A DNA stretch of 64,000 bases from Mytilus trossulus (GCF_036588685.1 NC_086373.1:25978001-26042000), one strand, 5' to 3'. Shown: positions 22,911 to 51,793, counted from the stretch's first letter. Numbers and translations: made by a program. Notes: a model not told the origin generated them from the letters alone.

Positions 22911-23456
22911 CTTGCAAGTGGCTGTCAATCGTGGGAATGTAACATAAGTTATTACAAGTATCATACTACCGGAGCGGGGATCGATCAAGGAACCTTAATA
23001 TTAGTAGTCCGATTCAAAAACCATGCACTACACCACGGCTCTGAAACACGAATAATCTTAAAATGATCTTAGTTTAAAGGTGACTACCCTTGCAGATATC
23101 ACGCCATCAAATTAATTTTGAAACAATTGAAATGGGGAAAGTAACATTTCTGTCCTTTTTTACACGAGAAAGGATTAATGGAGACCACTCACCCCATTCA
23201 AACAAGACTTGGGTAAGGCTTGAATTTTAATATTTTTTTAATTTCAATTTTTAATCTAAAACCTTTTTTACATTATAACACTGAGGAGGTATAACTAACA
23301 TAATATACGTCCTCGATTACAACCCAGCCTCGGAAATTTAAGTAAATAGTTGACTTTCAAACAGTTAATATCCCTAATGCGCCTCAAATACTATTTATAA
23401 ACAATACGTCATCCATTTTCCAATCTTCTTTGTTTCAACAAGGATTTGTATAGTTG

Positions 23457-24128
23457 TCTAGCAAAGTATTCGGTAAAGTTGCAATTAAAAAAGTCCTCAA
23501 AACCTCTACTGAGTTTGAAGCTTTCCTCAGCCTCAAACACGAAAACATTGTCGAAGCCATTGAAATCATCGAAGCCGAAGAATTTGCCTTCGTTTTGATG
23601 GAATTCGCTGAATTCGGAGATGTTTTTGAATACATAATGAAAAACGGCCTCATGTCCGTTGAAGCCACCCTCTCTGTCTTCTCTCAAGTTGTCAAAGCAG
23701 TCGAATACTGCCACTCAAATGGAATCGCCCACAATGACATTAAATTAGAAAACGTCTTGTTATCTAATGGATGTGTCAAACTGGCTGATTTTGGATTTGC
23801 CAAATCAACCGTTATTGTTGCCGAATCTGAAGAATTTTGTGGAACCCTCCCATACGCTGCCCCCGAAGTCATTATGGGAATGGAACACAATACCATGAAA
23901 GCCGACATGTGGAGTATGGGAGTTATGCTTTACGTCATGCTCTTCGGAGCTTTCCCATTCTCCGATAGTGACGCAACCTCTATGGTCAAAGCTCAAATCT
24001 CAAACACCCTCTCTTTCCCCGAAAACACTAGCGACATCGTAAAATCCCTCGTCTCCTCCATGCTTGAACCCTCTGTTGAAAAACGTGCTGATGCCATCTC
24101 AGTCCGTCTTGCCTTGGGTCAGTTTTAA
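23457..24128 (+). pseudogene. TSSK-like kinase unit 1, 5'-truncated (no promoter, no ATG, first 22 codons missing)
   Basis: Homology starts at TCTAGC (codon 23); the ORF track start at 23454 is a TTG; carries E25K. Confidence 0.85.
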
Positions 24129-24355
24129 ATACCCAAGCATCCTTGAAATCGCAACAGGCTCCGTTATAGGATCTTGTTGTGATTTCAAGGATGTTTTTTT
24201 TTTGTCCATTCGATTGTTACGGTAAACCATGTATATATAACACTTGGGCATACCTTTATCCGATACAATATACGGTTACGGTAAACCTACGTGTTATCAA
24301 TCAATTTTACATTCTCATCTTCTTTGTTTCAACAAACTCATTCTATTTTCATTTT

Positions 24356-24361
24356 AATAAA
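24356..24361 (+). terminator. Polyadenylation signal AATAAA of the kinase unit (repeated in all 16 units)
   Basis: AATAAA ~228 nt after the stop codon, followed ~25 nt later by GT-rich TTGTTTGTTTTC. Confidence 0.7.
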
Positions 24362-24589
24362 CTTACTGTGACGTGAGTTAAGCATTGTTTGTTTTCTGAA
24401 AAACCTTGAATGGCTGCAGAGAAACAGAAAATTAGAACGCTCAAGTTACGACATAGTCTATTTATTAATTGTTATTCAAGTTTACCACTTGACCGCACAA
24501 TCCCGTAGCAAAGCAAGCTGTTTTCATAGGTTTGGGAAGAAAACAAGTTGACTCTAACAATCCTCTTACTTTCTTTGTATTGAGATTCG

Positions 24590-25110
24590 GGTTTGTAACC
24601 GATTCCATGTGGTTACGGTAAACAAGAATTTATGGTCAGTCCATAGTTATATATTTTGTTGAATCATGTTCTAATCCCAATAACTTAAATATATTAAAAG
24701 CACATAGAAAATGATTTCATCGGTTTACACTTAGCTTGCTGTGGTAAACATTGCATACGAGGATACGGTAAACTGAACTGTATAATAACTTGTTCGGTTA
24801 CGGTAAACCTTTATCGTATAAGTTTATGGTTACGGTAAACATGACAGTTAAAGGCAACACGGTAAACTTATAAGATAAATGCCCTTGTACAACCAATTAC
24901 TTTGTTTACCGTTTGCAAGAGTAGTTACCATTAATGAAAAGGGGAGATTGTTCAATAATGTACTGTTTCATTGTGTAAGAAAGCATTTATTTGAACTTTC
25001 CACCCTTCAGCATCAATCATTGGAACAGTCCGTAGCAGCCATATCTCTATATAAGGCGTGAATTTCAGTATTTTGATACCTTTATTACACTAAATCCACG
25101 CCAATTTAAA
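24590..25110 (+). promoter_or_regulatory. Kinase unit promoter: clustered (GGTT)ACGGTAAAC motifs and a TATA box (repeated before units 2-16)
   Basis: TATATAA at 25048-25054, 63 nt before the ATG; reverse CCAAT (ATTGG) ~25018; AAAATGG start context; multiple GTAAAC-core motifs at 24611-24912. Confidence 0.7.
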
Positions 25111-25848
25111 ATGGAACTTTTATTGAACAGTGGACTTTCAAACGTTGTAGCCCTAACTGAAGAAGTTTTCTCCGCCTCTAGCGAAGTATTCGGTAAAGTT
25201 GCAATTAAAAAAGTCCTCAAAACCTCTACTGAGTTTGAAGCTTTCCTCAGCCTCAAACACGAAAACATTGTCGAAGCCATTGAAATCATCGAAGCCGAAG
25301 AATTTGCCTTCGTTTTGATGGAATTCGCTGAATTCGGAGATGTTTTTGAATACATAATGAAAAACGGCCTCATGTCCGTTGAAGCCACCCTCTCTGTCTT
25401 CTCTCAAGTTGTCAAAGCAGTCGAATACTGCCACTCAAATGGAATCGCCCACAATGACATTAAATTAGAAAACGTCTTGTTATCTAATGGATGTGTCAAA
25501 CTGGCTGATTTTGGATTTGCCAAATCAACCGTTATTGTTGCCGAATCTGAAGAATTTTGTGGAACCCTCCCATACGCTGCCCCCGAAGTCATTATGGGAA
25601 TGGAACACAATACCATGAAAGCCGACATGTGGAGTATGGGAGTTATGCTTTACGTCATGCTCTTCGGAGCTTTCCCATTCTCCGATAGTGACGCAACCTC
25701 TATGGTCAAAGCTCAAATCTCAAACACCCTCTCTTTCCCCGAAAACACTAGCGACATCGTAAAATCCCTCGTCTCCTCCATGCTTGAACCCTCTGTTGAA
25801 AAACGTGCTGATGCCATCTCAGTCCGTCTTGCCTTGGGTCAGTTTTAA
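25111..25848 (+). CDS. Intronless TSSK-like (CAMK group) Ser/Thr kinase, 245 aa, unit 2
   Basis: VAIK, H.NIV, HNDIKLEN, DFG, FCGTLPYAAPE, DMWSMGVMLY and the subdomain XI Arg. The TSSK assignment is by eye (V.SA.SE, GD..EYI..NG, PF.DS...M...Q....FP). Confidence 0.9.
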   Translation: MELLLNSGLSNVVALTEEVFSASSEVFGKVAIKKVLKTSTEFEAFLSLKHENIVEAIEIIEAEEFAFVLMEFAEFGDVFEYIMKNGLMSVEATLSVFSQVVKAVEYCHSNGIAHNDIKLENVLLSNGCVKLADFGFAKSTVIVAESEEFCGTLPYAAPEVIMGMEHNTMKADMWSMGVMLYVMLFGAFPFSDSDATSMVKAQISNTLSFPENTSDIVKSLVSSMLEPSVEKRADAISVRLALGQF

Positions 25849-26821
25849 ATACCCAAGCATCCTTGAAATCGCAACAGGCTCCGTTATAGGATCTTGTTGT
25901 GATTTCAAGGATGTTTTTTTTTTGTCCATTCGATTGTTACGGTAAACCATGTATATAAAACACTTGGGCATACCTTTATCCGATACAATATACGGTTACG
26001 GTAAACCTAAGTGTTATCAATCAATTTTACATTCTCATCTTCTTTGTTTCAACAAACTCATTCTATTTTCATTTTAATAAACTTACTGTGACGTGAGTTA
26101 AGCATTGTTTGTTTTCTGAAAAACCTTGAATGGCTGCAGAGAAACAGAAAATTAGAACGCTCAAGTTACGACATAGTCTATTTATTAATTGTTATTCAAG
26201 TTTACCACTTGACCGCACAATCCCGTAGCAAAGCAAGCTGTTTTCATAGGTTTGGGAAGAAATGGAAAACAAGTTGACTCTAACAATCCTCTTACTTTCT
26301 TTGTATTGAGATTCGGGTTTGTAACCGATTCCATGTGGTTACGGTAAACAAGAATGTATGGTCAGTCCATAGTTATATATTTTGTTGAATCATGTTTAAA
26401 TATATTAAAAGCACATAGAAAATGATTTCATCGGTTTACACTTAGCTTGCTGTGGTAAACATTGCATACGAGGATACGGTAAACTGAACTGTATAATAAC
26501 TTGTTCGGTTACGGTAAACCTTTATCGTATAAGTTTATGGTTACGGTAAACATGACAGTTAAAGGCAACACGGTAAACTTATAAGATAAATGCCCTTGTA
26601 CAACCAATTACTTTGTTTACCGTTTGCAAGAGTAGTTACCATTAATGAAAAGGGGAGATTGTTCAATAATGTACTGTTTCATTGTGTAAGAAAGCATTTA
26701 TTTGAACTTTCCACCCTTCAGCATCAATCATTGGAACAGTCCGTAGCAGCCATATCTCTATATAAGGCGTGAATTTCAGTATTTTGATACCTTTATTACA
26801 CTAAATCCACGCCAATTTAAA

Positions 26822-27559
26822 ATGGAACTTTTATTGAACAGTGGACTTTCAAACGTTGTAGCCCTAACTGAAGAAGTTTTCTCCGCCTCTAGCGAAGTAT
26901 TCGGTAAAGTTGCAATTAAAAAAGTCCTCAAAACCTCTACTGAGTTTGAAGCTTTCCTCAGCCTCAAACACGAAAACATTGTCGAAGCCATTGAAATCAT
27001 CGAAGCCGAAGAATTTGCCTTCGTTTTGATGGAATTCGCTGAATTCGGAGATGTTTTTGAATACATAATGAAAAACGGCCTCATGTCCGTTGAAGCCACC
27101 CTCTCTGTCTTCTCTCAAGTTGTCAAAGCAGTCGAATACTGCCACTCAAATGGAATCGCCCACAATGACATTAAATTAGAAAACGTCTTGTTATCTAATG
27201 GATGTGTCAAACTGGCTGATTTTGGATTTGCCAAATCAACCGTTATTGTTGCCGAATCTGAAGAATTTTGTGGAACCCTCCCATACGCTGCCCCCGAAGT
27301 CATTATGGGAATGGAACACAATACCATGAAAGCCGACATGTGGAGTATGGGAGTTATGCTTTACGTCATGCTCTTCGGAGCTTTCCCATTCTCCGATAGT
27401 GACGCAACCTCTATGGTCAAAGCTCAAATCTCAAACACCCTCTCTTTCCCCGAAAACACTAGCGACATCGTAAAATCCCTCGTCTCCTCCATGCTTGAAC
27501 CCTCTGTTGAAAAACGTGCTGATGCCATCTCAGTCCGTCTTGCCTTGGGTCAGTTTTAA
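26822..27559 (+). CDS. TSSK-like kinase, unit 3
   Basis: Protein identical to unit 2. Confidence 0.9.
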   Translation: MELLLNSGLSNVVALTEEVFSASSEVFGKVAIKKVLKTSTEFEAFLSLKHENIVEAIEIIEAEEFAFVLMEFAEFGDVFEYIMKNGLMSVEATLSVFSQVVKAVEYCHSNGIAHNDIKLENVLLSNGCVKLADFGFAKSTVIVAESEEFCGTLPYAAPEVIMGMEHNTMKADMWSMGVMLYVMLFGAFPFSDSDATSMVKAQISNTLSFPENTSDIVKSLVSSMLEPSVEKRADAISVRLALGQF

Positions 27560-28532
27560 ATACCCAAGCATCCTTGAAATCGCAACAGGCTCCGTTATAG
27601 GATCTTGTTGTGATTTCAAGGATGGTTTTTTTTTGTCCATTCGATTGTTACGGTAAACCATGTATATAAAACACTTGGGCATACCTTTATCCGATACAAT
27701 ATACGGTTACGGTAAACCTAAGTGTTATCAATCAATTTTACATTCTCATCTTCTTTGTTTCAACAAACTCATTCTATTTTCATTTTAATAAACTTACTGT
27801 GACGTGAGTTAAGCATTGTTTGTTTTCTGAAAAACCTTGAATGGCTGCAGAGAAACAGAAAATTAGAACGCTCAAGTTACGACATAGTCTATTTATTAAT
27901 TGTTATTCAAGTTTACCACTTGACCGCACAATCCCGTAGCAAAGCAAGCTGTTTTCATAGGTTTGGGAAGAAATGGAAAACAAGTTGACTCTAACAATCC
28001 TCTTACTTTCTTTGTATTGAGATTCGGGTTTGTAACCGATTCCATGTGGTTACGGTAAACAAGAATGTATGGTCAGTCCATAGTTATATATTTTGTTGAA
28101 TCATGTTTAAATATATTAAAAGCACATAGAAAATGATTTCATCGGTTTACACTTAGCTTGCTGTGGTAAACATTGCATACGAGGATACGGTAAACTGAAC
28201 TGTATAATAACTTGTTCGGTTACGGTAAACCTTTATCGTATAAGTTTATGGTTACGGTAAACATGACAGTTAAAGGCAACACGGTAAACTTATAAGATAA
28301 ATGCCCTTGTACAACCAATTACTTTGTTTACCGTTTGCAAGAGTAGTTACCATTAATGAAAAGGGGAGATTGTTCAATAATGTACTGTTTCATTGTGTAA
28401 GAAAGCATTTATTTGAACTTTCCACCCTTCAGCATCAATCATTGGAACAGTCCGTAGCAGCCATATCTCTATATAAGGCGTGAATTTCAGTATTTTGATA
28501 CCTTTATTACACTAAATCCACGCCAATTTAAA

Positions 28533-29270
28533 ATGGAACTTTTATTGAACAGTGGACTTTCAAACGTTGTAGCCCTAACTGAAGAAGTTTTCTCCGCCTC
28601 TAGCGAAGTATTCGGTAAAGTTGCAATTAAAAAAGTCCTCAAAACCTCTACTGAGTTTGAAGCTTTCCTCAGCCTCAAACACGAAAACATTGTCGAAGCC
28701 ATTGAAATCATCGAAGCCGAAGAATTTGCCTTCGTTTTGATGGAATTCGCTGAATTCGGAGATGTTTTTGAATACATAATGAAAAACGGCCTCATGTCCG
28801 TTGAAGCCACCCTCTCTGTCTTCTCTCAAGTTGTCAAAGCAGTCGAATACTGCCACTCAAATGGAATCGCCCACAATGACATTAAATTAGAAAACGTCTT
28901 GTTATCTAATGGATGTGTCAAACTGGCTGATTTTGGATTTGCCAAATCAACCGTTATTGTTGCCGAATCTGAAGAATTTTGTGGAACCCTCCCATACGCT
29001 GCCCCCGAAGTCATTATGGGAATGGAACACAATACCATGAAAGCCGACATGTGGAGTATGGGAGTTATGCTTTACGTCATGCTCTTCGGAGCTTTCCCAT
29101 TCTCCGATAGTGACGCAACCTCTATGGTCAAAGCTCAAATCTCAAACACCCTCTCTTTCCCCGAAAACACTAGCGACATCGTAAAATCCCTCGTCTCCTC
29201 CATGCTTGAACCCTCTGTTGAAAAACGTGCTGATGCCATCTCAGTCCGTCTTGCCTTGGGTCAGTTTTAA
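28533..29270 (+). CDS. TSSK-like kinase, unit 4
   Basis: Protein identical to unit 2. Confidence 0.9.
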   Translation: MELLLNSGLSNVVALTEEVFSASSEVFGKVAIKKVLKTSTEFEAFLSLKHENIVEAIEIIEAEEFAFVLMEFAEFGDVFEYIMKNGLMSVEATLSVFSQVVKAVEYCHSNGIAHNDIKLENVLLSNGCVKLADFGFAKSTVIVAESEEFCGTLPYAAPEVIMGMEHNTMKADMWSMGVMLYVMLFGAFPFSDSDATSMVKAQISNTLSFPENTSDIVKSLVSSMLEPSVEKRADAISVRLALGQF

Positions 29271-30258
29271 ATACCCAAGCATCCTTGAAATCGCAACAGG
29301 CTCCGTTTTAGGATCTTGTTGTGATTTCAAGGATGTTTTTTTTTTGTCCATTCGATTGTTACGGTAAACCATGTATATATAACACTTGGGCATACCTTTA
29401 TCCGATACAATATACGGTTACGGTAAACCTAAGTGTTATCAATCAATTTTACATTCTCATCTTCTTTGTTTCAACAAACTCATTCTATTTTCATTTTAAT
29501 AAACTTACTGTGACGTGAGTTAAGCATTGTTTGTTTTCTGAAAAACCTTGAATGGCTGCAGAGAAACAGAAAATTAGAACGCTAAAGTTACGACATAGTC
29601 TATTTATTAATTGTTATTCAAGTTTACCACTTGACCGCACAATCCCGTAGCAAAGCAAGCTGTTTTCATAGGTTTGGGAAGAAATGGAAAACAAGTTGAC
29701 TCTAACAATCCTCTTACTTTCTTTGTATTGAGATTCGGGTTTGTAACCGATTCCATGTGGTTACGGTAAACAAGAATTTATGGTCAGTCCATAGTTATAT
29801 ATTTTGTTGAATCATGTTCTAATCCCAATAACTTAAATATATTAAAAGCACATAGAAAATGATTTCATCGGTTTACACTTAGCTTGCTGTGGTAAACATT
29901 GCATACGAGGATACGGTAAACTGAACTGTATAATAACTTGTTCGGTTACGGTAAACCTTTATCGTATAAGTTTATGGTTACGGTAAACATGACAGTTAAA
30001 GGCAACACGGTAAACTTATAAGATAAATGCCCTTGTACAACCAATTACTTTGTTTACCGTTTGCAAGAGTAGTTACCATTAATGAAAAGGGGAGATTGTT
30101 CAATAATGTACTGTTTCATTGTGTAAGAAAGCATTTATTTGAACTTTCCACCCTTCAGCATCAATCATTGGAACAGTCCGTAGCAGCCATATCTCTATAT
30201 AAGGCGTGAATTTCAGTATTTTGATACCTTTATTACACTAAATCCACGCCAATTTAAA

Positions 30259-30996
30259 ATGGAACTTTTAATGAACAGTGGACTTTCAAACGTTGTAGCC
30301 CTAACTGAAGAAGTTTTCTCCGCCTCTAGCGAAGTATTCGGTAAAGTTGCAATTAAAAAAGTCCTCAAAACCTCTACTGAGTTTGAAGCTTTCCTCAGCC
30401 TCAAACACGAAAACATTGTCGAAGCCATTGAAATCATCGAAGCCGAAGAATTTGCCTTCGTTTTGATGGAATTCGCTGAATTCGGAGATGTTTTTGAATA
30501 CATAATGAAAAACGGCCTCATGTCCGTTGAAGCCACCCTCTTTGTCTTCTCTCAAGTTGTCAAAGCAGTCGAATACTGCCACTCAAATGGAATCGCCCAC
30601 AATGACATTAAATTAGAAAACGTCTTGTTATCTAATGGATGTGTCAAACTGGCTGATTTTGGATTTGCCAAATCAACCGTTATTGTTGCCGAATCTGAAG
30701 AATTTTGTGGAACCCTCCCATACGCTGCCCCCGAAGTCATTATGGGAATGGAACACAATACCATGAAAGCCGACATGTGGAGTATGGGAGTTATGCTTTA
30801 CGTCATGCTCTTCGGAGCTTTCCCATTCTCCGATAGTGACGCAACCTCTATGGTCAAAGCTCAAATCTCAAACACCCTCTCTTTCCCCGAAAACACTAGC
30901 GACATCGTAAAATCCCTCGTCTCCTCCATGCTTGAACCCTCTGTTGAAAAACGTGCTGATGCCATCTCAGTCCGTCTTGCCTTGGGTCAGTTTTAA
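30259..30996 (+). CDS. TSSK-like kinase, unit 5 (L5M, S95F)
   Basis: Intact ORF with two missense changes. Confidence 0.9.
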   Translation: MELLMNSGLSNVVALTEEVFSASSEVFGKVAIKKVLKTSTEFEAFLSLKHENIVEAIEIIEAEEFAFVLMEFAEFGDVFEYIMKNGLMSVEATLFVFSQVVKAVEYCHSNGIAHNDIKLENVLLSNGCVKLADFGFAKSTVIVAESEEFCGTLPYAAPEVIMGMEHNTMKADMWSMGVMLYVMLFGAFPFSDSDATSMVKAQISNTLSFPENTSDIVKSLVSSMLEPSVEKRADAISVRLALGQF

Positions 30997-31984
30997 ATAC
31001 CCAAGCATCCTTGAAATCGCAACAGGCTCCGTTATAGGATCTTGTTGTGATTTCAAGGATGTTTTTTTTTTGTCCATTCGATTGTTACGGTAAACCATGT
31101 ATATATAACACTTGGGCATACCTTTATCCGATACAATATACGGTTACGGTAAACCTACGTGTTATCAATCAATTTTACATTCTCATCTTCTTTGTTTCAA
31201 CAAACTCATTCTATTTTCATTTTAATAAACTTACTGTGACGTGAGTTAAGCATTGTTTGTTTTCTGAAAAACCTTGAATGGCTGCAGAGAAACAGAAAAT
31301 TAGAACGCTCAAGTTACGACATAGTCTATTTATTAATTGTTATTCAAGTTTACCACTTGACCGCACAATCCCGTAGCAAAGCAAGCTGTTTTCATAGGTT
31401 TGGGAAGAAATGGAAAACAAGTTGACTCTAACAATCCTCTTACTTTCTTTGTATTGAGATTCGGGTTTGTAACCGATTCCATGTGGTTACGGTAAACAAG
31501 AATTTATGGTCAGTCCATAGTTATATATTTTGTTGAATCATGTTCTAATCCCAATAACTTAAATATATTAAAAGCACATAGAAAATGATTTCATCGGTTT
31601 ACACTTAGCTTGCTGTGGTAAACATTGCATACGAGGATACGGTAAACTGAACTGTATAATAACTTGTTCGGTTACGGTAAACCTTTATCGTATAAGTTTA
31701 TGGTTACGGTAAACATGACAGTTAAAGGCAACACGGTAAACTTATAAGATAAATGCCCTTGTACAACCAATTACTTTGTTTACCGTTTGCAAGAGTAGTT
31801 ACCATTAATGAAAAGGGGAGATTGTTCAATAATGTACTGTTTCATTGTGTAAGAAAGCATTTATTTGAACTTTCCACCCTTCAGCATCAATCATTGGAAC
31901 AGTCCGTAGCAGCCATATCTCTATATAAGGCGTGAATTTCAGTATTTTGATACCTTTATTACACTAAATCCACGCCAATTTAAA

Positions 31985-32722
31985 ATGGAACTTTTATTGA
32001 ACAGTGGACTTTCAAACGTTGTAGCCCTAACTGAAGAAGTTTTCTCCGCCTCTAGCGAAGTATTCGGTAAAGTTGCAATTAAAAAAGTCCTCAAAACCTC
32101 TACTGAGTTTGAAGCTTTCCTCAGCCTCAAACACGAAAACATTGTCGAAGCCATTGAAATCATCGAAGCCGAAGAATTTGCCTTCGTTTTGATGGAATTC
32201 GCTGAATTCGGAGATGTTTTTGAATACATAATGAAAAACGGCCTCATGTCCGTTGAAGCCACCCTCTCTGTCTTCTCTCAAGTTGTCAAAGCAGTCGAAT
32301 ACCGCCACTCAAATGGAATCGCCCACAATGACATTAAATTAGAAAACGTCTTGTTATCTAATGGATGTGTCAAACTGGCTGATTTTGGATTTGCCAAATC
32401 AACCGTTATTGTTGCCGAATCTGAAGAATTTTGTGGAACCCTCCCATACGCTGCCCCCGAAGTCATTATGGGAATGGAACACAATACCATGAAAGCCGAC
32501 ATGTGGAGTATGGGAGTTATGCTTTACGTCATGCTCTTCGGAGCTTTCCCATTCTCCGATAGTGACGCAACCTCTATGGTCAAAGCTCAAATCTCAAACA
32601 CCCTCTCTTTCCCCGAAAACACTAGCGACATCGTAAAATCCCTCGTCTCCTCCATGCTTGAACCCTCTGTTGAAAAACGTGCTGATGCCATCTCAGTCCG
32701 TCTTGCCTTGGGTCAGTTTTAA
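31985..32722 (+). CDS. TSSK-like kinase, unit 6 (C107R)
   Basis: Intact ORF; YCH becomes YRH. Confidence 0.88.
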   Translation: MELLLNSGLSNVVALTEEVFSASSEVFGKVAIKKVLKTSTEFEAFLSLKHENIVEAIEIIEAEEFAFVLMEFAEFGDVFEYIMKNGLMSVEATLSVFSQVVKAVEYRHSNGIAHNDIKLENVLLSNGCVKLADFGFAKSTVIVAESEEFCGTLPYAAPEVIMGMEHNTMKADMWSMGVMLYVMLFGAFPFSDSDATSMVKAQISNTLSFPENTSDIVKSLVSSMLEPSVEKRADAISVRLALGQF

Positions 32723-33711
32723 ATACCCAAGCATCCTTGAAATCGCAACAGGCTCCGTTATAGGATCTTGTTGTGATTTCAAGGATGTTTTTTTTTTTGT
32801 CCATTCGATTGTTACGGTAAACCATGTATATATAACACTTGGGCATACCTTTATCCGATACAATATACGGTTACGGTAAACCTACGTGTTATCAATCAAT
32901 TTTACATTCTCATCTTCTTTGTTTCAACAAACTCATTCTATTTTCATTTTAATAAACTTACTGTGACGTGAGTTAAGCATTGTTTGTTTTCTGAAAAACC
33001 TTGAATGGCTGCAGAGAAACAGAAAATTAGAACGCTCAAGTTACGACATAGTCTATTTATTAATTGTTATTCAAGTTTACCACTTGACCGCACAATCCCG
33101 TAGCAAAGCAAGCTGTTTTCATAGGTTTGGGAAGAAATGGAAAACAAGTTGACTCTAACAATCCTCTTACTTTCTTTGTATTGAGATTCGGGTTTGTAAC
33201 CGATTCCATGTGGTTACGGTAAACAAGAATTTATGGTCAGTCCATAGTTATATATTTTGTTGAATCATGTTCTAATCCCAATAACTTAAATATATTAAAA
33301 GCACATAGAAAATGATTTCATCGGTTTACACTTAGCTTGCTGTGGTAAACATTGCATACGAGGATACGGTAAACTGAACTGTATAATAACTTGTTCGGTT
33401 ACGGTAAACCTTTATCGTATAAGTTTATGGTTACGGTAAACATGACAGTTAAAGGCAACACGGTAAACTTATAAGATAAATGCCCTTGTACAACCAATTA
33501 CTTTGTTTACCGTTTGCAAGAGTAGTTACCATTAATGAAAAGGGGAGATTGTTCAATAATGTACTGTTTCATTGTGTAAGAAAGCATTTATTTGAACTTT
33601 CCACCCTTCAGCATCAATCATTGGAACAGTCCGTAGCAGCCATATCTCTATATAAGGCGTGAATTTCAGTATTTTGATACCTTTATTACACTAAATCCAC
33701 GCCAATTTAAA

Positions 33712-38875: not shown

Positions 38876-39600
38876 ATGGAACTTTTATTGAACAGTGGAC
38901 TTTCAAACGTTGTAGCCCTAACTGAAGAAGTTTTCTCCGCCTCTAGCGAAGTATTCGGTAAAGTTGCAATTAAAAAAGTCCTCAAAACCTCTACTGAGTT
39001 TGAAGCTTTCCTCAGCCTCAAACACGAAAACATTGTCGAAGCCATTGAAATCATCGAAGCCGAAGAATTTGCCTTCGTTTTGATGGAATTCGCTGAATTC
39101 GGAGATGTTTTTGAATACATAATGAAAAACGGCCTCATGTCCGTTGAAGCCACCCTCTCTGTGTCAAAGCAGTCGAATACTGCCACTCAAATGGAATCGC
39201 CCACAATGACATTAAATTAGAAAACGTCTTGTTATCTAATGGATGTGTCAAACTGGCTGATTTTGGATTTGCCAAATCAACCGTTATTGTTGCCGAATCT
39301 GAAGAATTTTGTGGAACCCTCCCATACGCTGCCCCCGAAGTCATTATGGGAATGGAACACAATACCATGAAAGCCGACATGTGGAGTATGGGAGTTATGC
39401 TTTACGTCATGCTCTTCGGAGCTTTCCCATTCTCCGATAGTGACGCAACCTCTATGGTCAAAGCTCAAATCTCAAACACCCTCTCTTTCCCCGAAAACAC
39501 TAGCGACATCGTAAAATCCCTCGTCTCCTCCATGCTTGAACCCTCTGTTGAAAAACGTGCTGATGCCATCTCAGTCCGTCTTGCCTTGGGTCAGTTTTAA
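38876..39600 (+). pseudogene. TSSK-like kinase unit 10, frameshifted
   Basis: 13-bp deletion (CTTCTCTCAAGTT) at ~39162; span is 725 bp versus 738 bp. Confidence 0.9.
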
Positions 39601-41314: not shown

Positions 41315-42302
41315 ATACCCAAGCATCCTTGAAATCGCAACAGGCTCCGTTATAGGATCTTGTTGTGATTTCAAGGATGTTTTTTTTTTGTCCATTCGAT
41401 TGTTACGGTAAACCATGTATATATAACACTTGGGCATACCTTTATCCGATACAATATACGGTTACGGTAAACCTACGTGTTATCAATCAATTTTACATTC
41501 TCATCTTCTTTGTTTCAACAAACTCATTCTATTTTCATTTTAATAAACTTACTGTGACGTGAGTTAAGCATTGTTTGTTTTCTGAAAAACCTTGAATGGC
41601 TGCAGAGAAACAGAAAATTAGAACGCTCAAGTTACGACATAGTCTATTTATTAATTGTTATTCAAGTTTACCACTTGACCGCACAATCCCGTAGCAAAGC
41701 AAGCTGTTTTCATAGGTTTGGGAAGAAATGGAAAACAAGTTGACTCTAACAATCCTCTTACTTTCTTTGTATTGAGATTCGGGTTTGTAACCGATTCCAT
41801 GTGGTTACGGTAAACAAGAATTTATGGTCAGTCCATAGTTATATATTTTGTTGAATCATGTTCTAATCCCAATAACTTAAATATATTAAAAGCACATAGA
41901 AAATGATTTCATCGGTTTACACTTAGCTTGCTGTGGTAAACATTGCATACTAGGATACGGTAAACTGAACTGTATAATAACTTGTTCGGTTACGGTAAAC
42001 CTTTATCGTATAAGTTTATGGTTACGGTAAACATGACAGTTAAAGGCAACACGGTAAACTTATAAGATAAATGCCCTTGTACAACCAATTACTTTGTTTA
42101 CCGTTTGCAAGAGTAGTTACCATTAATGAAAAGGGGAGATTGTTCAATAATGTACTGTTTCATTGTGTAAGAAAGCATTTATTTGAACTTTCCACCCTTC
42201 AGCATCAATCATTGGAACAGTCCGTAGCAGCCATATCTCTATATAAGGCGTGAATTTCAGTATTTTGATACCTTTATTACACTAAATCCACGCCAATTTA
42301 AA

Positions 42303-43040
42303 ATGGAACTTTTATTGAACAGTGGACTTTCAAACGTTGTAGCCCTAACTGAAGAAGTTTTCTCCGCCTCTAGCGAAGTATTCGGTAAAGTTGCAATTAA
42401 AAAAGTCCTCAAAACCTCTACTGAGTTTGAAGCTTTCCTCAGCCTCAAACACGAAAACATTGTCGAAGCCATTGAAATCATCGAAGCCGAAGAATTTGCC
42501 TTCGTTTTGATGGAATTCGCTGAATTCGGAGATGTTTTTGAATACATAATGAAAAACGGCCTCATGTCCGTTGAAGCCACCCTCTCTGTCTTCTCTCAAG
42601 TTGTCAAAGCAGTCGAATACTGCCACTCAAATGGAATCGCCCACAATGACATTAAATTAGAAAACGTCTTGTTATCTAATGGATGTGTCAAACTGGCTGA
42701 TTTTGGATTTGCCAAATCAACCGTTATTGTTGCCGAATCTGAAGAATTTTGTGGAACCCTCCCATACGCTGCCCCCGAAGTCATTATGGGAATGGAACAC
42801 AATACCATGAAAGCCGACATGTGGAGTATGGGAGTTATGCTTTACGTCATGCTCTTCGGAGCTTTCCCATTCTCCGATAGTGACGCAACCTCTATGGTCA
42901 AAGCTCAAATCTCAAACACCCTCTCTTTCCCCGAAAACACTAGCGACATCGTAAAATCCCTCGTCTCCTCCATGCTTGAACCCTCTGTTGAAAAACGTGC
43001 TGATGCCATCTCAGTCCGTCTTGCCTTGGGTCAGTTTTAA
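42303..43040 (+). CDS. TSSK-like kinase, unit 12
   Basis: Protein identical to unit 2. Confidence 0.9.
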   Translation: MELLLNSGLSNVVALTEEVFSASSEVFGKVAIKKVLKTSTEFEAFLSLKHENIVEAIEIIEAEEFAFVLMEFAEFGDVFEYIMKNGLMSVEATLSVFSQVVKAVEYCHSNGIAHNDIKLENVLLSNGCVKLADFGFAKSTVIVAESEEFCGTLPYAAPEVIMGMEHNTMKADMWSMGVMLYVMLFGAFPFSDSDATSMVKAQISNTLSFPENTSDIVKSLVSSMLEPSVEKRADAISVRLALGQF

Positions 43041-44015
43041 ATACCCAAGCATCCTTGAAATCGCAACAGGCTCCGTTATAGGATCTTGTTGTGATTTCAA
43101 GGATGTTTTTTTTTTGTCCATTCGATTGTTACGGTAAACCATGTATATATAACACTTGGGCATACCTTTATCCGATACAATATACGGTTACGGTAAACCT
43201 ACGTGTTATCAATCAATTTTACATTCTCATCTTCTTTGTTTCAACAAACTCATTCTATTTTCATTTTAATAAACTTACTGTGACGTGAGTTAAGCATTGT
43301 TTGTTTTCTGAAAAACCTTGAATGGCTGCAGAGAAACAGAAAATTAGAACGCTCAAGTATTTATTAATTGTTATTCAAGTTTACCACTTGACCGCACAAT
43401 CCCGTAGCAAAGCAAGCTGTTTTCATAGGTTTGGGAAGAAATGGAAAACAAGTTGACTCTAACAATCCTCTTACTTTCTTTGTATTGAGATTCGGGTTTG
43501 TAACCGATTCCATGTGGTTACGGTAAACAAGAATTTATGGTCAGTCCATAGTTATATATTTTGTTGAATCATGTTCTAATCCCAATAACTTAAATATATT
43601 AAAAGCACATAGAAAATGATTTCATCGGTTTACACTTAGCTTGCTGTGGTAAACATTGCATACGAGGATACGGTAAACTGAACTGTATAATAACTTGTTC
43701 GGTTACGGTAAACCTTTATCGTATAAGTTTATGGTTACGGTAAACATGACAGTTAAAGGCAACACGGTAAACTTATAAGATAAATGCCCTTGTACAACCA
43801 ATTACTTTGTTTACCGTTTGCAAGAGTAGTTACCATTAATGAAAAGGGGAGATTGTTCAATAATGTACTGTTTCATTGTGTAAGAAAGCATTTATTTGAA
43901 CTTTCCACCCTTCAGCATCAATCATTGGAACAGTCCGTAGCAGCCATATCTCTATATAAGGCGTGAATTTCAGTATTTTGATACCTTTATTACACTAAAT
44001 CCACGCCAATTTAAA

Positions 44016-44753
44016 ATGGAACTTTTATTGAACAGTGGACTTTCAAACGTTGTAGCCCTAACTGAAGAAGTTTTCTCCGCCTCTAGCGAAGTATTCGGTA
44101 AAGTTGCAATTAAAAAAGTCCTCAAAACCTCTACTGAGTTTGAAGCTTTCCTCAGCCTCAAACACGAAAACATTGTCGAAGCCATTGAAATCATCGAAGC
44201 CGAAGAATTTGCCTTCGTTTTGATGGAATTCGCTGAATTCGGAGATGTTTTTGAATACATAATGAAAAACGGCCTCATGTCCGTTGAAGCCACCCTCTCT
44301 GTCTTCTCTCAAGTTGTCAAAGCAGTCGAATACTGCCACTCAAATGGAATCGCCCACAATGACATTAAATTAGAAAACGTCTTGTTATCTAATGGATGTG
44401 TCAAACTGGCTGATTTTGGATTTGCCAAATCAACCGTTATTGTTGCCGAATCTGAAGAATTTTGTGGAACCCTCCCATACGCTGCCCCCGAAGTCATTAT
44501 GGGAATGGAACACAATACCATGAAAGCCGACATGTGGAGTATGGGAGTTATGCTTTACGTCATGCTCTTCGGAGCTTTCCCATTCTCCGATAGTGACGCA
44601 ACCTCTATGGTCAAAGCTCAAATCTCAAACACCCTCTCTTTCCCCGAAAACACTAGCGACATCGTAAAATCCCTCGTCTCCTCCATGCTTGAACCCTCTG
44701 TTGAAAAACGTGCTGATGCCATCTCAGTCCGTCTTGCCTTGGGTCAGTTTTAA
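44016..44753 (+). CDS. TSSK-like kinase, unit 13
   Basis: Protein identical to unit 2. Confidence 0.9.
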   Translation: MELLLNSGLSNVVALTEEVFSASSEVFGKVAIKKVLKTSTEFEAFLSLKHENIVEAIEIIEAEEFAFVLMEFAEFGDVFEYIMKNGLMSVEATLSVFSQVVKAVEYCHSNGIAHNDIKLENVLLSNGCVKLADFGFAKSTVIVAESEEFCGTLPYAAPEVIMGMEHNTMKADMWSMGVMLYVMLFGAFPFSDSDATSMVKAQISNTLSFPENTSDIVKSLVSSMLEPSVEKRADAISVRLALGQF

Positions 44754-45728
44754 ATACCCAAGCATCCTTGAAATCGCAACAGGCTCCGTTATAGGATCTT
44801 GTTGTGATTTCAAGGATGTTTTTTTTTTGTCCATTCGATTGTTACGGTAAACCATGTATATATAACACTTGGGCATACCTTTATCCGATACAATATACGG
44901 TTACGGTAAACCTACGTGTTATCAATCAATTTTACATTCTCATCTTCTTTGTTTCAACAAACTCATTCTATTTTCATTTTAATAAACTTACTGTGACGTG
45001 AGTTAAGCATTGTTTGTTTTCTGAAAAACCTTGAATGGCTGCAGAGAAACAGAAAATTAGAACGCTCAAGTATTTATTAATTGTTATTCAAGTTTACCAC
45101 TTGACCGCACAATCCCGTAGCAAAGCAAGCTGTTTTCATAGGTTTGGGAAGAAATGGAAAACAAGTTGACTCTAACAATCCTCTTACTTTCTTTGTATTG
45201 AGATTCGGGTTTGTAACCGATTCCATGTGGTTACGGTAAACAAGAATTTATGGTCAGTCCATAGTTATATATTTTGTTGAATCATGTTCTAATCCCAATA
45301 ACTTAAATATATTAAAAGCACATAGAAAATGATTTCATCGGTTTACACTTAGCTTGCTGTGGTAAACATTGCATACTAGGATACGGTAAACTGAACTGTA
45401 TAATAACTTGTTCGGTTACGGTAAACCTTTATCGTATAAGTTTATGGTTACGGTAAACATGACAGTTAAAGGCAACACGGTAAACTTATAAGATAAATGC
45501 CCTTGTACAACCAATTACTTTGTTTACCGTTTGCAAGAGTAGTTACCATTAATGAAAAGGGGAGATTGTTCAATAATGTACTGTTTCATTGTGTAAGAAA
45601 GCATTTATTTGAACTTTCCACCCTTCAGCATCAATCATTGGAACAGTCCGTAGCAGCCATATCTCTATATAAGGCGTGAATTTCAGTATTTTGATACCTT
45701 TATTACACTAAATCCACGCCAATTTAAA

Positions 45729-46466
45729 ATGGAACTTTTATTGAACAGTGGACTTTCAAACGTTGTAGCCCTAACTGAAGAAGTTTTCTCCGCCTCTAGC
45801 GAAGTATTCGGTAAAGTTGCAATTAAAAAAGTCCTCAAAACCTCTACTGAGTTTGAAGCTTTCCTCAGCCTCAAACACGAAAACATTGTCGAAGCCATTG
45901 AAATCATCGAAGCCGAAGAATTTGCCTTCGTTTTGATGGAATTCGCTGAATTCGGAGATGTTTTTGAATACATAATGAAAAACGGCCTCATGTCCGTTGA
46001 AGCCACCCTCTCTGTCTTCTCTCAAGTTGTCAAAGCAGTCGAATACTGCCACTCAAATGGAATCGCCCACAATGACATTAAATTAGAAAACGTCTTGTTA
46101 TCTAATGGATGTGTCAAACTGGCTGATTTTGGATTTGCCAAATCAACCGTTATTGTTGCCTAATCTGAAGAATTTTGTGGAACCCTCCCATACGCTGCCC
46201 CCGAAGTCATTATGGGAATGGAACACAATACCATGAAAGCCGACATGTGGAGTATGGGAGTTATGCTTTACGTCATGCTCTTCGGAGCTTTCCCATTCTC
46301 CGATAGTGACGCAACCTCTATGGTCAAAGCTCAAATCTCAAACACCCTCTCTTTCCCCGAAAACACTAGCGACATCGTAAAATCCCTCGTCTCCTCCATG
46401 CTTGAACCCTCTGTTGAAAAACGTGCTGATGCCATCTCAGTCCGTCTTGCCTTGGGTCAGTTTTAA
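45729..46466 (+). pseudogene. TSSK-like kinase unit 14, nonsense E145*
   Basis: GAA>TAA at 46161-46163. Confidence 0.88.
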
Positions 46467-47455
46467 ATACCCAAGCATCCTTGAAATCGCAACAGGCTCC
46501 GTTATAGGATCTTGTTGTGATTTCAAGGATGTTTTTTTTTTTGTCCATTCGATTGTTACGGTAAACCATGTATATATAACACTTGGGCATACCTTTATCC
46601 GATACAATATACGGTTACGGTAAATCTACGTGTTATCAATCAATTTTACATTCTCATCTTCTTTGTTTCAACAAACTCATTCTATTTTCATTTTAATAAA
46701 CTTACTGTGACGTGAGTTAAGCATTGTTTGTTTTCTGAAAAACCTTGAATGGCTGCAGAGAAACAGAAAATTAGAACGCTCAAGTTACGACATAGTCTAT
46801 TTATTAATTGTTATTCAAGTTTACCACTTGACCGCACAATCCCGTAGCAAAGCAAGCTGTTTTCATAGGTTTGGGAAGAAATGGAAAACAAGTTGACTCT
46901 AACAATCCTCTTACTTTCTTTGTATTGAGATTCGGGTTTGTAACCGATTCCATGTGGTTACGGTAAACAAGAATTTATGGTCAGTCCATAGTTATATATT
47001 TTGTTGAATCATGTTCTAATCCCAATAACTTAAATATATTAAAAGCACATAGAAAATGATTTCATCGGTTTACACTTAGCTTGCTGTGGTAAACATTGCA
47101 TACTAGGATACGGTAAACTGAACTGTATAATAACTTGTTCGGTTACGGTAAACCTTTATCGTATAAGTTTATGGTTACGGTAAACATGACAGTTAAAGGC
47201 AACACGGTAAACTTATAAGATAAATGCCCTTGTACAACCAATTACTTTGTTTACCGTTTGCAAGAGTAGTTACCATTAATGAAAAGGGGAGATTGTTCAA
47301 TAATGTACTGTTTCATTGTGTAAGAAAGCATTTATTTGAACTTTCCACCCTTCAGCATCAATCATTGGAACAGTCCGTAGCAGCCATATCTCTATATAAG
47401 GCGTGAATTTCAGTATTTTGATACCTTTATTACACTAAATCCACGCCAATTTAAA

Positions 47456-48193
47456 ATGGAACTTTTATTGAACAGTGGACTTTCAAACGTTGTAGCCCTA
47501 ACTGAAGAAGTTTTCTCCGCCTCTAGCGAAGTATTCGGTAAAGTTGCAATTAAAAAAGTCCTCAAAACCTCTACTGAGTTTGAAGCTTTCCTCAGCCTCA
47601 AACACGAAAACATTGTCGAAGCCATTGAAATCATCGAAGCCGAAGAATTTGCCTTCGTTTTGATGGAATTCGCTGAATTCGGAGATGTTTTTGAATACAT
47701 AATGAAAAACGGCCTCATGTCCGTTGAAGCCACCCTCTCTGTCTTCTCTCAAGTTGTCAAAGCAGTCGAATACTGCCACTCAAATGGAATCGCCCACAAT
47801 GACATTAAATTAGAAAACGTCTTGTTATCTAATGGATGTGTCAAACTGGCTGATTTTGGATTTGCCAAATCAACCGTTATTGTTGCCGAATCTGAAGAAT
47901 TTTGTGGAACCCTCCCATACGCTGCCCCCGAAGTCATTATGGGAATGGAACACAATACCATGAAAGCCGACATGTGGAGTATGGGAGTTATGCTTTACGT
48001 CATGCTCTTCGGAGCTTTCCCATTCTCCGATAGTGACGCAACCTCTATGGTCAAAGCTCAAATCTCAAACACCCTCTCTTTCCCCGAAAACACTAGCGAC
48101 ATCGTAAAATCCCTCGTCTCCTCCATGCTTGAACCCTCTGTTGAAAAACGTGCTGATGCCATCTCAGTCCGTCTTGCCTTGGGTCAGTTTTAA
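47456..48193 (+). CDS. TSSK-like kinase, unit 15
   Basis: Protein identical to unit 2. Confidence 0.9.
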   Translation: MELLLNSGLSNVVALTEEVFSASSEVFGKVAIKKVLKTSTEFEAFLSLKHENIVEAIEIIEAEEFAFVLMEFAEFGDVFEYIMKNGLMSVEATLSVFSQVVKAVEYCHSNGIAHNDIKLENVLLSNGCVKLADFGFAKSTVIVAESEEFCGTLPYAAPEVIMGMEHNTMKADMWSMGVMLYVMLFGAFPFSDSDATSMVKAQISNTLSFPENTSDIVKSLVSSMLEPSVEKRADAISVRLALGQF

Positions 48194-49181
48194 ATACCCA
48201 AGCATCCTTGAAATCGCAACAGGCTCCGTTATAGGATCTTGTTGTGATTTCAAGGATGTTTTTTTTTTGTCCATTCGATTGTTACGGTAAACCATGTATA
48301 TATAACACTTGGGCATACCTTTATCCGATACAATATACGGTTACGGTAAACCTACGTGTTATCAATCAATTTTACATTCTCATCTTCTTTGTTTCAACAA
48401 ACTCATTCTATTTTCATTTTAATAAACTTACTGTGACGTGAGTTAAGCATTGTTTGTTTTCTGAAAAACCTTGAATGGCTGCAGAGAAACAGAAAATTAG
48501 AACGCTCAAGTTACGACATAGTCTATTTATTAATTGTTATTCAAGTTTACCACTTGACCGCACAATCCCGTAGCAAAGCAAGCTGTTTTCATAGGTTTGG
48601 GAAGAAATGGAAAACAAGTTGACTCTAACAATCCTCTTACTTTCTTTGTATTGAGATTCGGGTTTGTAACCGATTCCATGTGGTTACGGTAAACAAGAAT
48701 TTATGGTCAGTCCATAGTTATATATTTTGTTGAATCATGTTCTAATCCCAATAACTTAAATATATTAAAAGCACATAGAAAATGATTTCATCGGTTTACA
48801 CTTAGCTTGCTGTGGTAAACATTGCATACTAGGATACGGTAAACTGAACTGTATAATAACTTGTTCGGTTACGGTAAACCTTTATCGTATAAGTTTATGG
48901 TTACGGTAAACATGACAGTTAAAGGCAACACGGTAAACTTATAAGATAAATGCCCTTGTACAACCAATTACTTTGTTTACCGTTTGCAAGAGTAGTTACC
49001 ATTAATGAAAAGGGGAGATTGTTCAATAATGTACTGTTTCATTGTGTAAGAAAGCATTTATTTGAACTTTCCACCCTTCAGCATCAATCATTGGAACAGT
49101 CCGTAGCAGCCATATCTCTATATAAGGCGTGAATTTCAGTATTTTGATACCTTTATTACACTAAATCCACGCCAATTTAAA

Positions 49182-49919
49182 ATGGAACTTTTATTGAACA
49201 GTGGACTTTCAAACGTTGTAGCCCTAACTGAAGAAGTTTTCTCCGCCTCTAGCGAAGTATTCGGTAAAGTTGCAATTAAAAAAGTCCTCAAAACCTCTAC
49301 TGAGTTTGAAGCTTTCCTCAGCCTCAAACACGAAAACATTGTCGAAGCCATTGAAATCATCGAAGCCGAAGAATTTGCCTTCGTTTTGATGGAATTCGCT
49401 GAATTCGGAGATGTTTTTGAATACATAATGAAAAACGGCCTCATGTCCGTTGAAGCCACCCTCTCTGTCTTCTCTCAAGTTGTCAAAGCAGTCGAATACT
49501 GCCACTCAAATGGAATCGCCCACAATGACATTAAATTAGAAAACGTCTTGTTATCTAATGGATGTGTCAAACTGGCTGATTTTGGATTTGCCAAATCAAC
49601 CGTTATTGTTGCCGAATCTGAAGAATTTTGTGGAACCCTCCCATACGCTGCCCCCGAAGTCATTATGGGAATGGAACACAATACCATGAAAGCCGACATG
49701 TGGAGTATGGGAGTTATGCTTTACGTCATGCTCTTCGGAGCTTTCCCATTCTCCGATAGTGACGCAACCTCTATGGTCAAAGCTCAAATCTCAAACACCC
49801 TCTCTTTCCCCGAAAACACTAGCGACATCGTAAAATCCCTCGTCTCCTCCATGCTTGAACCCTCTGTTGAAAAACGTGCTGATGCCATCTCAGTCCGTCT
49901 TGCCTTGGGTCAGTTTTAA
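49182..49919 (+). CDS. TSSK-like kinase, unit 16
   Basis: Protein identical to unit 2. Confidence 0.9.
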   Translation: MELLLNSGLSNVVALTEEVFSASSEVFGKVAIKKVLKTSTEFEAFLSLKHENIVEAIEIIEAEEFAFVLMEFAEFGDVFEYIMKNGLMSVEATLSVFSQVVKAVEYCHSNGIAHNDIKLENVLLSNGCVKLADFGFAKSTVIVAESEEFCGTLPYAAPEVIMGMEHNTMKADMWSMGVMLYVMLFGAFPFSDSDATSMVKAQISNTLSFPENTSDIVKSLVSSMLEPSVEKRADAISVRLALGQF

Positions 49920-51793
49920 ATACCCAAGCATCCTTGAAATCGCAACAGGCTCCGTTATAGGATCTTGTTGTGATTTCAAGGATGTTTTTTTTTTGTCCAT
50001 TCGATTGTTACGGTAAACCATGTATATATAACACTTGGGCATACCTTTATCCGATACAATATACGGTTACGGTAAACCTACGTGTTATCAATCAATTTTA
50101 CATTCTCATCTTCTTTGTTTCAACAAACTCATTCTATTTTCATTTTAATAAACTTACTGTGACGTGAGTTAAGCATTGTTTGTTTTCTGAAAAACCTTGA
50201 ATGGCTGCAGAGAAACAGAAAATTAGAACGCTTAAGTTACGACATAGTCTATTTATTAATTGTTATTCAAGTTTACCACTTGACCGCACAATCCCGTAGC
50301 AAAGCAAGCTGTTTTCATAGGTTTGGGAAGAAATGGAAAACAAGTTGACTCTAACAATCCTCTTACTTTCTTTGTATTGAGATTCGGGTTTGTAACCGAT
50401 TCCATGTGGTTACGGTAAACAAGAATTTATGGTCAGTCCATAGTTATATATTTTGTTGAATCATGTTCTAATCCCAATAACTTAAATATGGGTGCAATCA
50501 ACAGTTTTTTTCTATGACGTCATGTTTTGAGGGACCATGCATATGTGACCCTTACTGGTGGACTGATTAATAAAGATACTTGTATAAAACTAGATATCAC
50601 TGGAATCAGAATGTTCTCTAGTTTATAATGAAATAAAAATAATGTGTACTTTTAATATATTATAAAAATTTCATCCAAGGAACATGGGGGAAAATAAGTA
50701 TAATTTTAACATAAAAAACTTGAAATCAGGTCCAATCTCCCATACAGACAGAGTTATCGTCCTTTCCTCCTCAATCTATGGGAGATTGAATCAGGTCAAG
50801 TGCACACCCATGAAGACATGATCCATGCACATTTTTCATAATCAAAACTGTATGAATTTTGTAGGTTTTTACCTGGCCTTTCAAAAAAATCTTGTTTCAG
50901 GGTACGGTTTCCTGCTCCGAAAAGAGCTACAGTGGCTGCAAATAAGTTTTCAATTTTCACTGCTAAAAAAACAGACTGTTTACAGTGTTGTCTCCCCTCG
51001 AAACATGTTTATTTAATATAATTTTTAAAATTATTTCAATCATTCAACCTGTTTTAATTGAAAGCTATTTAACTAATTTTTACAATCAAATACAAAAAAC
51101 ATGATACTTTTTCACCAAGTCAGTAAATAAACAGGGGTTTTCCTCCATGGTTATTTTTAGACGGGGAATAACCCCTAGTTTTTAGTACGAAACTGTTTAT
51201 GGCTTAACTTGAATACATTTTATATATTCATATTTATATTTCATTTTTTTTTTAAAGATGTGTTAATCCTTTTAAATGTAATGTAGATCAAAAGTAATTG
51301 TCAATAAATAAATCGATCATCCTTATATATCAAACATGTAAAATATACATTTGTGTATTCAATTATGAGGTCAAATAGTTGTGTATTGAGATTTTTATTT
51401 GGTCTGTACAATTATGTAACACTGATGTTGATAAGTAATGTGGTCAATTTAATTAACAGTTCAGGAGTTGGGGCATTGTAATTTAAAGTCAACCTTGTCC
51501 CTTGTTTGGTGATAATGACAGTTGTCAACAATCATACTAGTTTTGTATCAATACTCATTTACCTAATCAAAATGCTTAAAAAAAGCCAACACATCAACAC
51601 ACCTTAATAACATACATTCTTAAAAAAACTGCTCCAAAAATATACCCATTTTTCACAGTTTATATGTGTATTATGTGCACATACATGAGAACTATATTTC
51701 AGTGTGAATACATGCAGTTATAGTAGCTAACCTGTCGTGTTGTTAGGGAGGCCAGTGCCTATGCAAAGATTAAGATCAAGTTCCAACCTTTCC

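Follow-up and report, generated by a model that had tools for sequence, protein, structure and literature searches.

Why an intronless kinase gene should be kept as a long row of near-identical tandem copies is the question raised by a stretch of 64,000 nt of Mytilus trossulus DNA (GCF_036588685.1 NC_086373.1:25978001-26042000; the whole stretch is called the window below), in which such a row had been recognised by a first-pass annotation. To our knowledge, a signalling kinase is hardly ever maintained as a tandem array of dozens of copies that are nearly the same, and the earlier description of this array as unusual for a signalling kinase was supported. Judged from the sequence comparisons given below, the array belongs to a set of old arrays under concerted evolution and purifying selection, homogenised by unequal crossing-over or gene conversion. 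On the whole, it was considered probable that the array is dosage-selected and autonomously transcribed, and that it supplies a probably constitutively active mini-kinase in a restricted expression window, most likely in late male germ cells. Where this account concerns structure and evolution it is near certain, and where it concerns expression and activity we infer it. Gene models were already present in RefSeq and UniProt, so that the genes as such are known, and no paper was found in the literature on these arrays, their homogenisation, the unusual protein or the expression of these genes.

Layout and homogenisation of the arrays

The placement of the array in the window (Table 1) was reproduced exactly by blastn. 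Searching with one unit, its content was resolved into a 672-nt 3' partial, 15 full units (98.6-100% alike) and a 570-nt 5' partial; the 16 units counted earlier were thus confirmed, as 15 full units and two partial ones, and a stop-proximal anchor was found 16 times, spaced 1711-1727 nt apart. The units are arranged head to tail, and each is a complete gene with motif cluster, TATA box, 738-nt open reading frame (ORF) and AATAAA, as had been described. Intact ORFs (245 aa) were found in 13 of the 15 full-length copies, of which 11 give an identical protein, in agreement with the earlier counts. Besides the representative unit, this protein is encoded by the ORFs at 26822, 28533, 33712, 35425, 37150, 40577, 42303, 44016, 47456 and 49182, and the two variant intact copies are those at 30259 (L5M and S95F) and 31985 (C107R); the remaining 2/15 are broken. 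Just outside the left edge of the array (23400-23460), a 19-nt stretch matches part of the unit 3' region. For the leftmost unit, an internal deletion of approximately 830 nt (the promoter and the first 22 codons) therefore seems more likely than a cut by an insertion.

The alignment of the units contained 77 variable columns, mostly contributed by five indels of 6-15 nt, which are the source of the length classes. Distinct combinations of single-nucleotide polymorphisms (SNPs) and indels are carried by the units, and variants tend to be common to neighbouring units, as expected from unequal crossing-over. Four of 24 candidate public sequencing runs were examined, and three independent ones were DNA-like, with contigs spanning the spacer and crossing the unit-to-unit junction; in addition, a metagenome DNA contig (L017; another sample, species inferred) contains two units. 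Since the junction is present in three independent runs and in the two-unit metagenome contig, the tandem layout is not peculiar to one assembly. In one of the DNA-like runs, the contig depth over the spacer piece 24494-24742 was 43, compared with 8.6 over the ORF, and the piece runs on into unrelated sequence; it may be part of another repeat in that run's organism.

By a six-frame search of the whole M. trossulus genome, three arrays were located, on C1 (that of the window), on C3 (approximately 29 full-length units at 16.307-16.365 Mb, period 1891 nt) and on C4 (approximately 8-10 units at 20.12-20.15 Mb, period 1881 nt), respectively. The three arrays contain no fewer than 49 intact ORFs per haploid genome, an assembly count that is a lower bound. 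The protein of the C1 array is referred to as type A and those of the C3 and C4 arrays as type B, and the two types differ by 20-26 residues. Type A differs by only 4-5 residues from the 245-aa proteins of Mytilus edulis and Mytilus galloprovincialis, and type B by 2-3 residues from the models of these two species. The proteins of M. trossulus, M. edulis, M. galloprovincialis and Mytilus coruscus cluster by array type, not by species, and both types therefore go back beyond the split of the M. edulis species complex. Relatives of the same 245-aa length but lower identity (67-82%) were obtained from Logan/ENA samples; three of them lie on contigs of one length, 17,111 nt, which may be a sign of arrays in further mytilids.

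Averaged over all pairs of the 15 full units, SNP divergence was 0.18% (ORF 0.09%, spacer 0.24%). The ratio of nonsynonymous to synonymous divergence (dN/dS) was 0.14 between C1 and C3 and 0.175 between C1 and C4, with a synonymous divergence (dS) of 0.26; the window ORF differed by 1.9% from that of the type A unit on L017 (period 1870 nt), with a dS of 0.052 and a dN/dS of 0.17. Divergence within the array is thus tens of times below the dS to L017 or to the other type, and paralogs within the array are more alike (0.18%) than type A units from different samples (1.9%). The array had been called recently amplified. Its near-identity within the window stands, but the arrays predate the M. edulis complex; because M. 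edulis and M. galloprovincialis also have type A, and two other chromosomes carry a second type, the array is recently homogenised, not newly born. There was no sign of rapid protein evolution (dN/dS 0.14-0.18). The coding changes within the array comprised 3 missense, 1 nonsense, 1 frameshift and 1 synonymous change, from which it follows that a single copy evolves nearly neutrally before its homogenisation or loss.

Unique flanks common to the three arrays, as expected from segmental duplication, were not found. A block to the left of the window array (20357-22255) is 92% identical, in inverted orientation, to sequence beside the C4 array, and is probably a common satellite borne by a transposable element.

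The encoded kinase and its relatives

The 245-aa protein was matched by the Pfam profile Pkinase (PF00069) with an E value of 1.5e-51 (175.8 bits), over profile positions 44-254 only. In the AlphaFold2 (AF2) model, it forms a complete kinase with a five-stranded N-lobe and a short alphaC (predicted local distance difference test score 92.4), and the top Foldseek matches were SIK3, AMPK and MARK (template modelling score 0.82, E approximately 1e-21). Residues were surveyed in 28 aligned sequences, namely 17 family members together with more distant relatives. Lys33, Asp116, Asn121, the DFG motif (D133), the APE motif (A157) and Arg232 are invariant, and Glu41 and Lys118 are at least 90% conserved.

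Three other elements of a canonical kinase are changed. The glycine-rich loop GxGxxG is absent, with T-E-E-V-F-S throughout the array family, so that all three glycines are replaced, the second by Glu; relatives of 43% identity (the P0024 group) retain G-E-G-S-F-G. The beta2-beta3 hairpin is approximately 9 residues shorter, and the start of alphaC approximately 11 residues shorter. The arginine of the HRD motif is lost (H-N-D in the array, H-S/C/G-D in relatives), and at the activation-loop site the Thr of TSSK, MARK and the P0024 group is replaced by Glu or Asp; neither of the two features of an RD kinase, the HRD arginine and a phosphorylatable Thr or Ser in the T-loop, is thus present. Because the RD arginine is lost and the T-loop residue is acidic, the pattern is that expected of a kinase without need for activating phosphorylation, and the product is probably, on its residues, a constitutively active 'non-RD' mini-kinase. 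All catalytic residues are kept under purifying selection, which argues for activity.

The best-surviving alternative, that the product is a dead pseudokinase serving as an abundant scaffold or structural (e.g. sperm) protein, with the copies present for bulk supply and not for signalling, draws on the same residues. The T-x-E-x-x-S loop with its Glu at the second glycine, the shortened beta2-beta3 segment and alphaC start, the loss and variability (N, S, C or G) of the HRD arginine and the match to the Pfam profile from position 44 only all agree with it. In pseudokinases, however, the catalytic residues usually decay, whereas Lys33, Glu41, Asp116, Lys118, Asn121, DFG and APE show little or no variation here, even in relatives of 67% identity and in more distant ones, and the five-stranded N-lobe is modelled at high confidence. 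This alternative was therefore regarded as unlikely, and a mini-kinase that is probably active was preferred.

For the placement of the family, similarity and phylogeny were both used. The best protein matches overall were Mytilus proteins. The best named matches in the searched length range were arthropod TSSK1/3/6-like proteins (33-41% identity), and the nearest Atlas clusters were TSSK3 and TSSK6. The two best paralogs in the same genome (L018 and L019) are true TSSKs, with TSSK6 as their best solved relative by more than 30 bits; for the array protein, the PDB search ranked MARK3/4 (137 bits) above TSSK6 (116 bits). Among 38 kinases analysed by maximum likelihood, the members of the array family formed a clade (99/99) that was not nested in the TSSK clade; it was sister (95/91) to a mollusc-only clade made up of Patella and two genes on C7, followed by the P0024 group, and the tree gave no firm attachment of this larger group to the TSSK clade. 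A joint clade of the array-family group and TSSK was not rejected by the approximately unbiased test (p 0.42). With true TSSKs as the closest paralogs in the genome, the label 'TSSK-like' given by the first-pass annotation describes the similarity of the protein fairly. The family itself, however, belongs to a CAMK clade restricted to molluscs, and the label is one of annotation that does not establish membership of the TSSK family.

The two C7 genes (C7:55259881-55260405 and C7:55287690-55288223), which are intronless, encode 268-286 aa and lie 28 kb apart, are the closest relatives outside the arrays. Both keep a normal glycine-rich loop, and they are automatically named 'NUAK family SNF1-like kinase 2' (NUAK2) in several Mytilus species; within the array family, the automatic names vary among TSSK3-like (RefSeq), STK22 and MARK. 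The NUAK2 label on the C7 genes shows that automatic names are unstable in this clade. A further candidate, the 'TSTK1' of M. edulis (PMC3144882), was ruled out as the same gene, as its primers are absent from the window and its best match is a sea-urchin TSSK (4e-70).

Approximately 4-5 TSSK genes have been reported as normal for bivalves (PMC4883820, PMC8042308). Like canonical TSSKs, to which its best paralogs in the genome belong, the array protein is short, with little beyond a CAMK-group kinase domain, and is encoded by an intronless ORF, as are scallop Tssk3/7 (PMC8042308). Unlike them, it is encoded by approximately 50 tandem copies and not by single genes, and it lacks the glycine-rich loop, the HRD arginine and the T-loop Thr at its 33-41% identity.

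Promoter, hairpin and base composition of the unit

Homology between the array types extends from approximately -380, through the ORF, to approximately 100 nt past the stop, and the remaining spacer is unalignable. Between the type A unit of the window and that of L017, the block from -380 to approximately +100 is 93-98% identical, and the mid-spacer 51-81%. In the type B units (C3 and C4), an in-frame ATG lies 90 nt upstream of the ATG of the 245-aa ORF and gives rise to the 275-aa RefSeq models. The longer form is probably an annotation artefact, because its ATG is located upstream of the TATA box and a stop stands in the same frame of type A; the 245-aa ORF was taken as the product.

The conserved upstream block contains a promoter-like arrangement (Table 1). 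The motif ACGGTAAAC, mostly in the form (G)GTTACGGTAAAC, matches 122 times in the window, every time inside the array, with 0.32 matches expected. Both array types, and L017 as well, retain sites near -350, -313, -282 and -239/-251, and the TATA box TATATAAG stands at -62/-63 in all four unit types. GTTACGGTAAAC was also observed at approximately 30 other places of the genome, as 2-5 tandem 22-nt repeats in a young dispersed repeat family with copies 95-98% alike (e.g. C4:20784300-20786700, C8:12009000-12013000, C3:45343300-45346300 and C6:20243500-20244900). In the first of these, two motif blocks are inverted, approximately 900 nt apart, and adjoin a 16-nt tandem repeat. The dispersed motif pattern gave 80 matches, compared with 4 for a reversed control. 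The unit spacer as a fragment of the motif-bearing mobile element was ruled out, as there was no homology beyond the motif. The occurrence of the motif in both settings suggests that a single DNA-binding protein may recognise both the mobile element and the kinase promoter.

Just past the ORF, a hairpin recurs in every unit (e.g. 25855-25916), followed by a tract of T9-10. Its RNA fold was calculated at -41.1 kcal/mol (z -9.6), and none of 200 shuffles was equally stable. The arms are approximately 96% conserved between the types, at a dS of 0.26, and are also present in L017, with the loop differing by 18 nt; hairpin and T-tract together are more conserved between types than synonymous sites. 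A dispersed miniature inverted-repeat transposable element or a Helitron end was ruled out, as the 79-nt stretch is confined to this array, and no Rfam family (including the histone stem-loop) and no tRNA gene was found in the unit. The hairpin may serve in mRNA 3' end formation or storage, as a source of small RNAs, or as a DNA palindrome favouring recombination. Further downstream, AATAAA or ATTAAA lies 228-300 nt past the stop in all four unit types.

The observed/expected ratio of CpG was 0.88-0.98 in the ORF and spacer of all unit types, including those of C3 and C4, compared with 0.40-0.55 in most flanks; in the window, it was 0.91-0.98 in the array and 0.40-0.43 in the flanks 1-23000 and 52500-64000. 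Canonical TSSK loci of the same genome, at 0.83-0.93, resemble the array units. CpG content is bimodal in bivalves, where undepleted CpG marks DNA that is unmethylated in the germline, as in stage- or tissue-restricted genes, and the level in the array fits a germline-unmethylated, stage-restricted gene.

Such an architecture would also be expected if the array served a burst of expression in the early embryo or another window of rapid transcription, like early histone arrays, DUX4/D4Z4 or miR-430. A gene that is short, without introns, driven by a TATA box and present in many copies would then allow a large amount of transcript to be made quickly, and the hairpin would be used for 3' end formation or mRNA storage. 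The intronless 738-nt ORF, the TATA box, the clustered sites, the hairpin and T-tract with arms more conserved than synonymous sites, and the CpG ratio near 1 fit this proposal as well as they fit a germ-cell array. In histone- or rDNA-type arrays, as generally known, the units are likewise self-contained and intronless, with their own promoter and a stem-loop just past the ORF, and their homogenisation is likewise far younger than the arrays themselves. In contrast to those arrays, the mussel product is a signalling-type kinase, the stem of approximately 24 bp does not match the histone model, and a poly(A) hexamer is present. That hexamer, found in every unit type, together with the lack of a histone stem-loop or other Rfam match and the fact that the nearest named relatives are testis kinases, speaks against a burst array, and this possibility was considered a doubtful one, of less weight than a pseudokinase.

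Table 1 Features of the kinase array in the window (positions counted from the first nucleotide of the window)
Feature	Position	Strand	Details and evidence
Whole tandem array	23457-50489	+	blastn of a single unit against the window, anchor spacing, unit alignment
Leftmost 5'-truncated copy	23457-24128	+	ORF without first 22 codons, starts at codon 23; 99.85% identity to other units
Representative unit	24129-25848	+	spacer 24129-25110 and ORF 25111-25848
Hairpin, stem of approximately 24 bp	24135-24196	+	begins 7 nt past preceding stop; runs into T10 tract 24194-24203
ACGGTAAAC motifs	24219-24912		eight exact per unit (ten with GGTAAAC)
Promoter-proximal motif group	24765-24912	+ and -	-345, -310, -278 and -251 on +; -207 on -
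TATA box TATATAAG	25048-25055	+	63 nt before ATG
Intact 245-aa kinase-domain ORF, reduced N-lobe	25111-25848	+	Pfam Pkinase, AF2
Candidate poly(A) signal AATAAA	26076-26081	+	228 nt past stop of ORF 25111-25848
Broken copy	38876-39600	+	frameshift by 13-nt deletion near 39162
Broken copy	45729-46466	+	G>T near 46161, codon 145 GAA to TAA
Decayed, scrambled kinase ORF pieces	51794-52231	+	1.3 kb past right array end (blastn)

Elsewhere in the window, short tandem repeats were observed beside the array at 21063-22212, 53764-54367 and 61192-61696 (periods 135/261, 161, 161 and 169 nt). A decayed ORF like that of a long interspersed nuclear element, with weak endonuclease and reverse transcriptase matches, lies at 174-1451 (-), and an exon of a neighbouring gene encoding an MBT repeat at 4610-5062 (+; E 5.8e-19).

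Explanations of the array and their weight

According to the preferred explanation, each 1.7-kb unit would be an autonomous intronless gene for a divergent CAMK-group kinase, with its own promoter formed by the ACGGTAAAC cluster and the TATA box, followed by the ORF, the hairpin with its T-tract and the poly(A) hexamer. The units would be kept near-identical by unequal crossing-over or gene conversion, and the dose of a phosphorylation-independent kinase, needed at a high level in a restricted stage or tissue, would be supplied by copy number. By analogy with the TSSK relatives, late male germ cells would be the most likely site. With dN/dS at 0.14-0.18, purifying selection has acted over a long time, which speaks for a host gene selected for dosage rather than for a selfish amplicon of recent origin.

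Four points weigh against this explanation. The array family is not demonstrably inside the TSSK clade, and testis expression is suggested by distant homology only. Judged from the residue, a Glu at the position of the second glycine of the loop could block ATP binding and make the product a pseudokinase. From the changes within the array, single copies look individually dispensable. Finally, the fourth public run, an RNA metatranscriptome, covered only 24719-25874, at 95-97% identity, and this match is no proof of transcription, because it falls in the block common to both array types, promoter included.

A more far-reaching version, which we hold to be speculative and improbable, would join these elements in a mytilid-specific cassette of approximately 50 copies. 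A site-specific factor acting on ACGGTAAAC, shared with the young mobile element, would drive a burst of the phosphorylation-independent mini-kinase without a glycine-rich loop, and the palindrome past the ORF would have a part in forming the mRNA 3' end or small RNAs, or would promote homogenising recombination; such a cassette could act in sperm-egg conflict or in nuclear-mitochondrial conflict under doubly uniparental inheritance (DUI).

Slightly less probable still is an ampliconic germline system that is selfish or driven by conflict, through meiotic drive, sperm competition or a connection with DUI, and in which an arms race would drive up the copy number, by analogy with Stellate/Su(Ste), Slx/Sly and Smok/Tcr. 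The high copy number, the near-identity within arrays and the presence of arrays on three chromosomes are as such a system would have them, and the long conserved hairpin of each unit could give small RNAs. Mouse Smok is MARK-related, and the best solved relatives of the array protein, a CAMK-group kinase, are MARKs. The mussel arrays thus resemble the Smok/Tcr system of the t-haplotype, known from general background, in being multicopy and of the CAMK group, but nothing pointed to drive, to a distorter/responder pair or to haplotype restriction, and the arrays are shared between species and subject to purifying selection. With Drosophila Stellate/Su(Ste), mammalian TSPY and Slx/Sly, again from general background, they have in common tandem near-identical coding units homogenised within arrays. 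Those systems are sex-linked and conflict-driven, with fast turnover, whereas the mussel arrays lie on three large chromosomes, encode a slowly evolving protein (dN/dS 0.14-0.18) and, as far as the window and the array flanks are concerned, are accompanied by no antisense array, suppressor repeats or partner gene. Conservation of both array types extends moreover over no fewer than four Mytilus species, and relatives belonging to the family go down to 67% identity. An assembly artefact, or a dead satellite that merely holds an ORF, is hardly credible, since the difficulty of assembling long near-identical repeats and the 2/15 broken full-length copies are set against distinct SNP and indel combinations among the units, the junction in independent runs and a metagenome contig, purifying selection between arrays and between species, and intact ORFs in 13/15 full-length copies.

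The locus is a clean, sequence-resolved case of concerted evolution in a protein-coding array, with two types at three loci, in several species and under purifying selection. It is also a natural experiment in kinase design, in which the glycine-rich loop, the RD arginine and the T-loop phosphorylation site have been given up and every catalytic residue has been retained; if the kinase is active, it would broaden the view of the minimal ATP-binding lobe. If the arrays are expressed in the germline, they would offer an accessible model of dosage- or conflict-driven amplification in a broadcast spawner with doubly uniparental mitochondrial inheritance.

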